A stretch of 63,789 nt of DNA, counting the filler, from Olpidium bornovanus S191 (taxonomy: Eukaryota; Fungi; Olpidiomycota): assembly GCA_017911155.1 (NCBI GenBank). It is 29 parts of 29 records of this genome, joined end to end, with 100 filler letters (N's around TTAATTAATTAA, not from the genome) between each part and the next. Parts side by side here need not be neighbours in the genome. Positions count along the whole stretch, not along the records: positions 59,906 to 61,083 come from JAEFCI010003378.1; positions 61,184 to 63,789 come from JAEFCI010009028.1; 27 more parts are not named here. One strand, written 5' to 3'. The translations under genes were made by a program, and so were the position numbers. A model generated the notes under the pieces. That model searched no databases, was not told the origin of the DNA, and was given only the letters and a program-made list of their open reading frames with translations. This document shows positions 60,050 to 63,789 of this stretch, one piece after another. The stretch's first letter is position 1, and each line of letters starts with the position of its first letter.

Positions 60050-61923
60050 TCTCTCTGTCTCTTTCTCACTGCTCTCTCTTTGTCTCTCTCTCTCTCACAC
60101 TGTATATCTCTCTCGTTGTCTCTTTCTTTTGCCTCCTGGTCTGGAAATAACTGGGGCGCGCGCGGAAGTTTTTTTTTTTTTTCTCCGTAGAATTGCCCTG
60201 ACCAACCCCCCCCCTCTTCCCCTCTTCCCCTCTTCCCCTCTTCCCCTCTTCCCCCCTTTCCCCACATCACCCCCTTACCACCCCCCTCCCCCCGTTCCCC
60301 ACGAGGGTCGGAACGCGCCACGAGGGGGGCTTTCCCGCCGCCCCCTTCGTCGCCCCCCCCCGAAGGGCGAACACACACATCTGGAGGAGACGCGGCTCAG
60401 GACAAGAATGACGACACCGTTTCCCTTTCCTATCTTTCTCTCTTTCTTTCTCTCTCTCGGTCTCTCGCGCTCGCTCGTTCTCTTTCTTTCTTCACTCATT
60501 CCATCCGCTCTCCAGAGGGACTGATTATAGACGGGACAGAAAGAGAGAGAGTGCGTGCGTGCGTGCGTTCGCGTCCTTCCGGCTCTGAACAGAATATCAA
60601 CAGGGGAAACAGAGAACCCCACCGCCGTTCCCCGCTCATCCCGCGAACTCACCCCGCCCCGCCATCCCCACATTTTTATACACAGTCCGACGTCACGTTA
60701 CGCCGTCGCTTTCTGCTGCACTCATGTTCGGCCTCGTCGCGAAGCTCAAGGGGTCGTACTTCTGGACCTCGCTGAAGGTGGGAGAGAGCGGGTGGGTTTC
60801 CTCGGAGGAGAGAGCGGGAGAGGGGAGAGAGACAGAGAGAGAGAAAGAGAGAGAGCCAGAGGGACCACGGATCGGAAAAGCCCCAGCGTCACCCCACAGC
60901 CGGCCGGCCTGCTGGGTGGCGCACACACGTTGGCCCCCTCTTTCCCCCACCCTCTTCTCCGCCACACGCACACGCCCTGCGGGGTGTTCGTTCTCCTCGC
61001 GCGTCATTCCGTCCTTCCATGGCAGTACCGCCCAACTGGCCACCTCATTCTCAATCGGCAGTATCGGCCTCGCCCCTGTCATCNNNNNNNNNNNNNNNNN
61101 NNNNNNNNNNNNNNNNNNNNNNNNNNNTTAATTAATTAANNNNNNNNNNNNNNNNNNNNNNNNNNNNNNNNNNNNNNNNNNNNCATGATACTTGCTTGGC
61201 CCGTGAGACGGTTTGTGGCCATTGCCAGCTAGTCTTTCTTGTCCAGGCCTGCTTGTTCGAATGCGGATTCCAGCTTGGCAATGAAGTTTGCGAGGTTTGT
61301 TGCTCTGCCTGTGCCCGAAAAGGTTGGGAGTGCCGCTAGTAGTGTTTTCCCACCGCCGCTCCTCTTCTCTTTTGTGGTGGGGAGCTCATTGTCGCTGTCG
61401 TTTTTGCTGTTGACGTGGTCGCGTGTGACGAGTTCTTCGATGGTTTGTTGGTAGTCCTAAACTTGTTTGGTCAGGGCGCTTATTTGCTTCCATAGGACTT
61501 GTACTTCCGAGTCTGCGTCTGCTGCTGCCCGGCGTTTTTCCTGTTTTGCTCTTTCTCTTTGAAGAAGCACGGAGTCCACGATTCTTTGCAAGTGCGTAGA
61601 CAGCCTTGACATTCTGGTGTTCTGCGAGAAGGCGGAGTCTCTGGATTCACTTCGTCCGTGGGCGCCGGGCATCGTGGCATCCGCATTGGGGTTCTTCCTC
61701 TTTCAGTCGTGGCGTAGTAAGCATACGCCGTGTTCTCCTCTGCTTCTGCCGTTTGGAGGGCTCCCGGCAAGCCGTGTGCGTGCCGTCGTCCTCCCTCTCC
61801 CAGCACTTCACTTATGCTGAGTTGTGGGCGTTCTTCCATGGTTCCGCGTCCGCGTATGGGGAGTAAAAGGTTTGTGTTTGCTTCTTTGACGGGGTGTCTG
61901 CGGTTTGTGTTGCGCATCAAAAG

Positions 61924-61996
61924 TGGGCCGACCGAGGGTCGAACTCGGGACCTTCCCTATCCTGGAGGAACGCTATACCAACTGAGCTATCTGCCC
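61924..61996 (-). pseudogene. tRNA-like cassette in the 3' LTR (73 nt; apparent anticodon AGG, C at position 33)
   Basis: GGGCAGATAGCTCAGTTGGTATAGCGTTCCTCCAGGATAGGGAAGGTCCCGAGTTCGACCCTCGGTCGGCCCA. Folds as a cloverleaf (perfect 5-bp T stem, 6/7 acceptor pairs), has box A and box B, and is followed by CTTTT. Confidence 0.85.
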
Positions 61997-62155
61997 TATT
62001 CACCAGGTGTCTGGCTCGCCCTGCGAAGCCATTCCAACACCCCCCCTCGACCCAGGCACCTCAGGTTCTGCTGTCAATGGGGTTCAGCCACCCGCGCAAC
62101 CACAATCGGAGAGACGAAGTCACGATTGGGCTCATAACCTGTTGCATATCAAAAG

Positions 62156-62228
62156 TGGGCCGACCGAGGGTCGGACTTGGGACCTTCCTTATCTCGGAGG
62201 GACGCTCTACCAACTAAGCTATCTGCCC
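62156..62228 (-). pseudogene. tRNA-like cassette in the 5' LTR (73 nt; apparent anticodon GAG, box B mutated)
   Basis: GGGCAGATAGCTTAGTTGGTAGAGCGTCCCTCCGAGATAAGGAAGGTCCCAAGTCCGACCCTCGGTCGGCCCA, followed by CTTTT. Confidence 0.8.
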
Positions 62229-63789
62229 TATTCACCAGGTGTCTGGCTCGCCCTGTGAAGCCGGGCTCATAACCTGTGGTAAAACGTGCCCTCCGGAGGA
62301 GACCCCGGGAAATTCAAGGGAGCTGCGCAAGGATTTGAAAAAGGTGAATACTGTTCTGTTTCTTCGCGGTGTTTTGATTCTACGGATTCCGCGCCTGTTT
62401 ATGTTGGGATGCCGTGCGGATTCTACAAAAGGGGGAAAGGGGGAAGTAATTCGTGTAGGAGCTCTATCCGTGCTGCCTCTTGCTGCGCCCCCCCCTTTTT
62501 CCTACATATCCTACACCCCTTCCCCCACCCGCCGCTCTTCGCCCCCTTCTGACGGCGCAACCTGCTGGGCAGAACCGCCCACACTTCCGCCGTCGTCGAC
62601 CGCCGCCACCGTCGTCGTCGCCGCACCCCGCCGTTTTTTCCTCGATCGCACCTGCGACACCACTCCTCTGCGTCGCCGCCGCTTGCCGTCCCTGTCCGCG
62701 GTTCCTCCGACGAAGCGCAGCCCGCAGCGCAGCTTCCGCCGTTCCCGTCTCTGTCCCAGTGACGTGACGCCGCCCCGACCGCCGTCGGCCTCGGAAACCC
62801 GTTTCCCCTTCTCGACGAAGCGCTCACCGCTGCTATGCGCCGCCGCCGCCGTCGACTTCAGAGACCCGTCTTCCCTTCTCGACGAATCGCATCCCCGCGC
62901 ACTGCAGCAGCCCTGACGGCGCAGCCAAACCCCCCAAGTCGGACATGACCCCGCTGAACGCCGCCGCGATCGCCACTGCTCAGTCGCCTCTGGTTCGACC
63001 AAGCCGCAGCTGCACGCCATCGCCGCCGTTGCGTTCTGAGCTCAGCTCAGCTTCGAGTGCCTCCCTTCTCGGAGCGCACTCTTTTCGCCCCTGAGCTCAA
63101 CTCGGCGCCCCGTCTCGCACATGACAGCGCCGCTGTCTTTAAATCGCAGCTTCGCTTTCAAGCCTCTGCGGTCGAACGCCGCCCGCTCCGCTGCCGCTCC
63201 GCCGGCTCCCCGCAGCCCGCAGCGCCCACCGCCCACCGCCGTCGACTTCGGAAACCCGTCTCCCCTTCTCGACGAAGCGCTCATCGCCGGGACCGCAGCC
63301 GCCACTCTGCATCAGCCGGGCAGACCCGGCACAACGCCACCTTCAACCAACCCGCCGCCTTTTTTTCTTTAGGCGGCCGCAAAAAAAAAAAAAAAAAAAA
63401 TGGCGCCGGCGACCGCAAAAATGTTGCAGACGTTAAGTTCCCGCCCTCGGGCTCGTCTCCGTCTCCCCTGAAGATTTGAAGAGTTCAGAGAAGCCTCCTA
63501 TATCAAAATTCAGTCTGTAGCGCTAGCCCAGATCCGCGGTTGCATTGAGGTGATGTACAGCAGAAGAGGCCAGAAACTTCAGTTGCACCTCATTTGCTGG
63601 GATAACCGTGACCGTACTATCTGGCAGGCCATACCGGCCGAGTGGGTCCCCAGACCTATATTCTCGTTATGGCAGGGCTGTCTACTCCCTCACAAAACAT
63701 TGCTGTGGCTAAACGCCATCAGTGCGACAGGGCAGCCATAAACAAAATGGAAATGCTTCTGAGAGAAATCAATCAGTTGTACGCACATG

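Follow-up and report, generated by a model that had tools for sequence, protein, structure and literature searches.

A TRIM of the Helenus/TRIMp3 design with tRNA-like sequences in its LTRs from Olpidium bornovanus

Positions 61908-62262 of the window, which is the whole 63,789-nt stretch of Olpidium bornovanus DNA analysed here (filler included), hold a short non-coding sequence in which a tRNA-like unit occurs twice. The question raised by this locus is whether it represents an LTR element carrying a Pol III promoter within its repeats, or rather a set of tRNA genes, pseudogenes or SINE copies. The locus is very probably a minus-strand copy of a Helenus/TRIMp3-type TRIM, belonging to a family with elements of 359-366 bp. 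It matches the published group named Helenus or TRIMp3, non-autonomous LTR retrotransposons described in 2024 (Kojima 2024, PMC10886601), in a fungal lineage outside its list. The initial annotation of this DNA had mentioned a TRIM group of that name with tRNA sequences in its LTRs, and such a group does exist.

Structure of the window copy and of its insertion site

Two direct repeats of 123 nt each (61908-62030 and 62140-62262) share 91% identity. Comparison with other copies sets the full LTR length at 132 nt (61908-62039), and the limits of the 3' LTR are marked by breakpoints at 61907/8 and 62039 in contigs whose flanks are unrelated. The initial annotation had described repeats running from TG to CA, the 5' copy without its first 9 nt, around a 100-bp non-coding interior opening with a PBS and closing with a PPT, and this structure is confirmed (Table 1). 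Its orientation was corrected, as all the features lie on the minus strand, where the tRNA-like units run in the same sense as the element. The plus-strand reading was discarded: it places no PBS beside an LTR, whereas the minus strand provides the PBS, the PPT and TG...CA termini. The 12-mer of the PBS is antisense to the anticodon arms of both yeast and archaeal initiator tRNA.

Table 1. Features of the window copy, of the element that it interrupts and of other loci of the family
Feature	Position	Strand	Description
3' LTR, complete	62039..61908	-	132 nt, TGTTGGAAT...GCGCAACA; 97.7% identity to family consensus
5' LTR	62262..62140	-	123 nt, first 9 nt (TGTTGGAAT) missing; 93.5% identity to family consensus
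Non-coding interior	62040..62139	-	exactly 100 nt
PBS	62126..62139	-	GGTTATGAGCCCAA; directly 3' of the 5' LTR; antisense to initiator tRNA-Met anticodon stem-loop
PPT	62040..62048	-	GAGGGGGGG; G-rich; abuts TG of the 3' LTR
tRNA-like sequence, 3' LTR	61996..61924	-	73 nt; Rfam RF00005, 46.6 bits, E 3.5e-8
tRNA-like sequence, 5' LTR	62228..62156	-	73 nt; Rfam RF00005, 40.7 bits, E 1.5e-6
T4 tract, 3' LTR	61922..61919	-	1 nt past the tRNA-like 3' end; Pol III terminator-like
T4 tract, 5' LTR	62154..62151	-	1 nt past the tRNA-like 3' end
Host-element PBS	62263..62274	-	same 12-mer as the TRIM PBS; outside the TRIM
Host-element 5' LTR	62275..62506	-	about 232 nt, TGTAGGAAA...ACCACA; boundaries approximate; aligned to L004 LTR
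Host leader and decayed gag N-terminus	61184..61907	-	ends at the edge of the piece
TSD of L007			CTGAC/CTGAC; perfect
TSD of L008			CGACC/CGACC; perfect
TSD of L001			AATCC/AATCT; 4/5
L009			tandem array of the family

The window copy is slightly damaged, with no TSD and a truncated 5' LTR, and it is old, since its LTRs have diverged to the identity given above with a decay biased towards CpG. Its insertion point is the junction between the PBS and the leader of a second LTR element. An "empty" paralogue contig of the site joins 61906 to 62263 and skips exactly 61907-62262, while a repeat boundary at 62274 supports the edge of the host 5' LTR. The host gag is interrupted by in-frame stops at 61457-61459 and 61229-61231. 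The TRIM would have inserted canonically at the target CAAAC of the host element, and a later deletion of 13 nt, taking 4 nt from the TSD and 9 from the LTR, would account for both the absent TSD and the shortened 5' LTR. We also considered the copy as a reverse-transcription chimera, produced by a template switch at the host PBS or by cDNA capture at a break, an idea prompted by its abutting the host PBS, by the lack of a TSD and by the 9 missing nt. This was abandoned because insertion at CAAAC followed by that one deletion reproduces the observed junctions exactly.

A dispersed family

The family is dispersed, generates 5-bp TSDs, and also occurs as solo LTRs and in tandem arrays. Besides the window it is found on four contigs of the Olpidium bornovanus MAG (five loci in total) and on many public-run contigs, and it is not the single-locus repeat that the initial annotation had named as the finding that would speak against it. 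Three of the MAG contigs hold full elements of 359-366 bp with 5-bp TSDs (two perfect, one 4/5), and the PBS and PPT, whose lack in other copies that annotation had likewise named as counter-evidence, are kept in 6/6 interiors. In solo-LTR-like contigs from public runs, the 132-bp unit is set in unrelated flanking sequence. The consensus derived from eleven LTRs is 132 nt long, with termini TGTTG...CAACA; identity between the two LTRs of single elements ranges from 86 to 91%, and all the copies seen are decayed. Variants common to 5' LTRs and distinguishing them from their own 3' LTRs were evaluated as counter-evidence to retrotransposition and set aside; there are only 3 such sites, including 2 CpG transitions, and pairwise identity shows a star-like pattern.

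Public matches come from the Olpidium bornovanus MAG only, in agreement with the zoosporic fungal host proposed earlier. Of two LTR-pattern scans of JGI metagenome contigs, one returned 0 matches and the other 2 chance matches in unrelated sequence. In the public annotation of the MAG, the family is already a source of spurious "hypothetical proteins".

The tRNA-like units and their possible role in transcription

An Rfam scan at E<=1 returned tRNA only, with no 5S rRNA match, and RF00005 matches were obtained in 10/11 LTRs of the family (31.7-58.1 bits). The units had initially been described as 73-nt cloverleaves with a downstream TTTT; the 73-nt matches and the T tract after both units stand, but MFE folding yields no cloverleaf (z -0.04 and -0.65, no better than shuffles), and the tRNA call therefore rests on the covariance model. 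In the window, the unit of the 3' LTR has box A TAGCTCAGTTGG, box B GAGTTCGACCC and the anticodon loop CCAGGAU (AGG), and it is the only one called by Aragorn, as Pro-AGG. The unit of the 5' LTR has the loop CCGAGAU (GAG) and a box B mutated to GTCCGA. The discordant anticodons reported initially were thus recovered, and the Rfam alignments place C33 in both loops, again as reported. The family consensus retains both promoter boxes (box A TAGCTCAGTTGG and box B GAGTTCGACCC) along with an intact acceptor 3' strand and T4; its acceptor stem has an A5/G68 mismatch, and its anticodon loop is CCGGGAU, nominally Pro-GGG and also with C33.

These features bear on whether the LTRs carry working tRNA-Pro genes, in which case the element would spread functional tRNA genes. 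Aragorn calls Pro-GGG in 6 LTRs, the top copy reaches 58.1 bits with Rfam, and tRNA coding is considered possible for a few Helenus families (Kojima 2024, PMC10886601). Nevertheless, this reading is very improbable, as the near-universal U33 is replaced by C33 in the consensus, the acceptor stem is mismatched, the D arm is not Pro-like, the anticodon drifts among copies (AGG, GAG, GGG) and folding gives no stable cloverleaf. To our knowledge, moreover, eukaryotes do not normally use a Pro anticodon with G34. Judged by sequence, the units are not working tRNAs, since C33 stands in the consensus loop; this agrees with the initial annotation. With C33, the A5/G68 mismatch and Rfam scores of 31.7-58.1 bits, the tRNA part is likewise not an intact host tRNA, a match to which that annotation had named as counter-evidence. 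Even less credible is the view that the locus consists of two tandemly duplicated tRNA pseudogenes, or of tRNA-derived SINE copies, with no LTR element involved. The spacing between the two units is 232 nt, a T tract follows each of them, and one is flanked by a direct repeat of 15 nt, GGGCTCATAACCTGT, that can be mistaken for a SINE-type TSD. This repeat, however, is the LTR end plus the PBS, doubled because that PBS also occurs in the host element; the repeated unit extends 43 nt upstream of the tRNA-like start and has TG...CA termini, an A-rich or LINE-like tail is absent, and at three other loci 5-bp TSDs surround whole LTR-interior-LTR units.

As the TRIM encodes nothing, its copying must depend on the reverse transcriptase and integrase that an autonomous LTR retrotransposon in the same genome provides. 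We infer that the genomic RNA would start at the internal, tRNA-type Pol III promoter in the 5' LTR, read through the weak T4 of that LTR and terminate at its counterpart in the 3' LTR; the tRNA-like segment would thereby become the R region used in strand transfer. Pol III transcription is also unproven for the published Helenus elements (PMC10886601). A Pol II-transcribed TRIM of the ordinary kind, in which the tRNA-like segment is a fossil with no present promoter role (e.g. an old SINE or tRNA insertion in the ancestral LTR), is a somewhat unlikely alternative. In its favour, variability within the LTR peaks in the tRNA-like part (0.083 changes per site per copy, vs 0.057 upstream), and box B is decayed in many copies, with CpG loss in 5/11 LTRs and disruption elsewhere in 2 more; a T4 directly after the unit would also halt part of any Pol III transcription. 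Against it, the consensus promoter boxes, acceptor 3' strand and T4 are intact, and the block GCCCACTTTTGAT is invariant in 11/11 LTRs (the longest invariant run is 13; p about 0.03 by permutation), as is the T4 following the unit. Runs of T>=4 occur nowhere else in any element, the predicted transcript of ~320 nt fits Pol III, and Helenus, Ajax and Cassandra are independent instances of this design, of which the last is reported to be transcribed by Pol III.

Relatives, partner elements and significance

The likeness to Helenus is one of architecture, comprising a short, non-coding element, two direct LTRs with tRNA-derived boxes A and B, a PBS and a PPT between them, 5-bp TSDs, solo LTRs and tandem arrays. 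Fungal Helenus elements have a 5-bp TSD, and a PBS matching the iMet anticodon loop is their dominant type; the size of the Olpidium family falls at the low end of the published range of 311-1263 bp (PMC10886601). Sequence homology to the Repbase Helenus families is not required for membership, as Helenus is considered polyphyletic (PMC10886601). The fungal hosts on record are Pucciniales and three Agaricomycetes (PMC10886601), whereas the host here is an Olpidium-like zoosporic fungus. Cassandra, a group of plant TRIMs, similarly holds a Pol III promoter and terminator of small-RNA gene origin within both LTRs, but the embedded gene is 5S rRNA instead of a tRNA-like sequence and the hosts belong to another kingdom. 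Ty5 of yeast and copia of Drosophila share the priming mode predicted here from the PBS, which uses the initiator tRNA-Met anticodon stem-loop, but they differ from this 360-bp non-coding element in being autonomous members of the Copia superfamily with Pol II-type LTRs. SINE2 elements are also short and non-autonomous, with a tRNA-derived head containing boxes A and B; unlike the present family, they are devoid of LTRs, PBS and PPT, and their LINE machinery, variable longer TSDs and 3' tail have no counterpart here.

As for the autonomous partner with the same PBS postulated initially, gag-bearing LTR elements of the same genome have an identical ACA+GGTTATGAGCCCAA junction and the same TGTTGGAA LTR start, and support extends that far only. 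Their gag matches PF03732 (41.3 bits), with a weak Ty3_capsid match in addition, and the contigs end within gag. On the two gag pieces of the window Pfam gave no match, and gag was identified there via a homologue found by exhaustive search. The gag of the likely partner looks Ty3-like rather than Copia-like, while fungal Helenus elements have been linked only to Copia partners (Kojima 2024, PMC10886601). It is conceivable, albeit rather doubtful, that a Helenus-type element arose independently in this early-diverging fungal lineage and is mobilised by Ty3/gypsy-type elements priming from the initiator tRNA-Met anticodon loop. Should the partner prove Ty3-like with an internal tRNA-iMet primer, the known range of this priming mode, so far tied to Copia, would widen.

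In practical terms, the family inflates tRNA predictions through nominal Pro-GGG or Pro-AGG calls. Its terminator, a T4 present once per LTR and nowhere else, makes it a clean test case for termination versus read-through in a Pol III-driven LTR element. More broadly, the Helenus/TRIMp3 design, known from Dikarya, animals and a lycophyte, is now extended to an Olpidium-like zoosporic fungus, which lends support to the view that Pol III promoters are captured repeatedly by LTR elements.

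Anatomy and insertion site of the element

Within the piece 61184-63789, two direct repeats of 123 nt each (61908-62030 and 62140-62262; 91% identity) delimit a miniature LTR element (TRIM), the parts of which are coherent on the minus strand only. On this strand, the upstream repeat 62262..62140, ending in ...GCAACA, is directly followed by GGTTATGAGCCCAA, and GAGGGGGGG and then TGTTGGAATGGCTTC precede the downstream repeat. Contigs of three public sequencing runs diverge into unrelated flanks at 61907/8 and at 62039, rather than at 62030, indicating that the true LTR measures 132 nt (62039..61908), with termini TGTTG...CAACA. 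It follows that the 5' LTR is devoid of its first 9 nt, as the initial annotation had proposed, and that the interior is 100 nt long (62040-62139). The TRIM has no coding capacity. In initiator tRNA-Met, the anticodon stem-loop is complementary to the 12-mer GGTTATGAGCCC; identical letters are carried by an antisense yeast tRNAiMet oligonucleotide (PMC11230868) and by an archaeal initiator tRNA construct (PMC2965216).

The flank of the TRIM is another LTR retrotransposon (the host element, minus strand), which is repeated in public runs at 88-93% identity; the first of its two gag stops reads CAG in other copies. The host element's PBS is split by the TRIM after its nucleotide 12 and before its nucleotide 13. 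A 509-nt contig of one public run joins 61906 straight to 62263; it is a paralogue of the flanking repeat from which the 356-nt element is absent. Canonical insertion at a target CAAAC, followed by the loss of 13 nt (AAAC plus TGTTGGAAT), would exactly reproduce both junctions, and we infer this course of events in preference to more exotic chimera models.

Coordinates of TRIM copies and associated features (in the window, or on the named contigs of the Olpidium bornovanus MAG GCA_017911155.1)
Feature	Location	Strand	Details
tRNA-like unit, 3' LTR	61996..61924	minus	Rfam tRNA model, 46.6 bits, E 3.5e-8, 73 nt
tRNA-like unit, 5' LTR	62228..62156	minus	Rfam tRNA model, 40.7 bits, E 1.5e-6, 73 nt
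Host element 5' LTR	62506..62275	minus	~232 nt
Host element PBS	62274..62263	minus	same 12-mer as TRIM
Host element leader and decayed gag	within 61184-61907	minus	in-frame stops 61457-61459, 61229-61231
TRIM, full copy	L007:1662-2020		TSD CTGAC/CTGAC
TRIM, full copy	L008:317-681		TSD CGACC/CGACC
TRIM, full copy	L001:108-473		TSD AATCC/AATCT
TRIM, tandem array	L009:2-626		int-LTR-int-LTR-int-LTR; first interior cut by contig end; TSD not readable

Family copies, tRNA-like units and decay

ORFs running through the TRIM were translated and queried against a protein collection, and matched only translated TRIM copies, annotated as 'hypothetical proteins' in the Olpidium bornovanus MAG GCA_017911155.1. 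The gene models BJ554DRAFT_7210, _404, _1660 and _1885 of this MAG (L001:47-338, L007:1657-2078, L008:118-627 and L009:198-528) are TRIM translations, and are annotation artefacts. A 132-nt consensus was derived from 11 LTRs, single copies being 88.6-98.5% identical to it, and PBS and PPT are retained in all six interiors. Solo-LTR-like copies were present in run contigs of 1.7-2.1 kb, in which the rest of the sequence is unrelated to the TRIM apart from a 132-bp unit. A contig from a soil metagenome matches at 95% identity, and scans of JGI metagenomes gave no genuine match.

Between the window's two tRNA-like units, Aragorn calls that of the 3' LTR alone, as Pro-AGG. Their anticodon loops, CCAGGAU and CCGAGAU, confirm the disagreeing anticodons (AGG and GAG) and the C33 previously noted in both. 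Exactly TTTT begins 1 nt past each tRNA-like 3' end, and this T4 is the only run of at least four T in any TRIM copy. MFE folding of the units did not recover the cloverleaf, which fits decayed tRNA-like sequences. Across the family, Rfam scores lie between 31.7 and 58.1 bits; the consensus retains boxes A (TAGCTCAGTTGG) and B (GAGTTCGACCC), and has the loop CCGGGAU, with Pro-GGG called by Aragorn in 6 LTRs. It also features C33 and an A5/G68 acceptor mismatch, and is therefore not a working tRNA, as is described for published Helenus families (PMC10886601).

Among the 11 LTRs (window, L001, L007, L008 and L009), G>A and C>T account for 61 of the 88 substitutions from consensus (69%), and 34 of the 88 sit at its 9 CpG dinucleotides; this bias suggests cytosine methylation of repeats in the Olpidium bornovanus genome. 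The two LTRs of most elements differ in decay, one being close to the consensus (97-98.5%) and the other far more decayed (91-93.5%). The CpG of box B is lost in 5 of the 11 LTRs, and 2 further ones have a box B disrupted at other positions. The block GCCCACTTTTGAT, unchanged in all 11 (permutation p about 0.03), weakly hints at constraint.

Candidate partners and neighbouring repeats

The PBS and LTR terminus of the TRIM are common to gag-bearing elements of the same genome, the ACA+PBS junction occurring at 7 places on 5 contigs. P0002, a homologue of the host element's gag (47% identity, E 1.7e-5) with Pfam Retrotrans_gag (41.3 bits), sits on contig L004 behind a 186-nt LTR (TGTTGGAAA...TTTAACA) and the same GGTTATGAGCCCAA. 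The gag of the candidate partner looks to be of the Ty3/gypsy type, which is a lead to a partner other than the Copia one proposed for fungal Helenus (PMC10886601). Loci with a putative truncated-primer mode are L004:2308-2507, L006:327-545 and L005:971-1185; this mode is reported for Copia lineages in plants only (PMC10886601).

The region 62507-63370 is GC-rich and non-coding, with a 56-nt unit present three times (62775, 62842 and 63232), and a run contig is 100% identical to the window across 62626-63291. On the minus strand, its purine tract (GGGTGGGGGAAGGGG) terminates 9 nt ahead of the host LTR start, so that this LTR may be common to two tandem elements. At 63378-63432, an A run of ~21 nt lies between the near-identical 14-mers GGCGGCCGCAAAAA and GGCGACCGCAAAAA; past it, at the repeat boundary 63422, where a run contig diverges, the sequence starts TGTTGCAGACG, possibly marking the end of a further LTR. 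A second short-LTR element at L001:522-680 (LTR ~134 nt, TGTTGAAG...CTTAACA; PBS GGATATGAGCCCAA; interior GC-rich and repetitive) is 72% like the TRIM over 36 nt counted from the end of the LTR, and may be a related non-autonomous family.

Relation to Helenus and proposed mobilisation

LTR-retrotransposon architecture, 5-bp TSDs, solo LTRs and arrays are established for the TRIM family, and tandem arrays like that of L009 are known in other TRIMs and one Helenus family. Helenus comprises TRIMs with tRNA-derived LTR sequences, hosted by Pucciniales, three Agaricomycetes, six animal phyla and Selaginella; fungal families have a TSD of 5 bp and, as the dominant PBS type, the iMet anticodon-loop (Kojima 2024, PMC10886601). 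The Olpidium family agrees with Helenus in every structural criterion and differs in host lineage and, putatively, in its partner; the literature search found no paper connecting Olpidium to retrotransposons or Helenus. The overall interpretation of the initial annotation stands, the TRIM being real and well formed.

The TRIM would be copied by the proteins of a PBS-sharing, gag-bearing element, with priming by a tRNA-iMet fragment ending in the anticodon loop, as is reported for Ty5, copia and the majority of fungal Helenus (PMC10886601). Pol III would initiate upstream of the 5' LTR's tRNA-like unit, and some transcripts would pass the T4 of this LTR and stop at that of the 3' LTR, giving a ~320-nt RNA whose terminal tRNA-like repeats (~85 nt) may serve as R. 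As a Pol III terminator, T4 is efficient in vertebrates and poor in the yeasts studied; poor termination would explain how a full-length transcript could pass the T4 inside the LTR.

The Olpidium TRIM belongs to a kind described in 2024, and the kind itself is not new. Its LTRs will also be listed by tRNA predictors as Pro-GGG or Pro-AGG genes.
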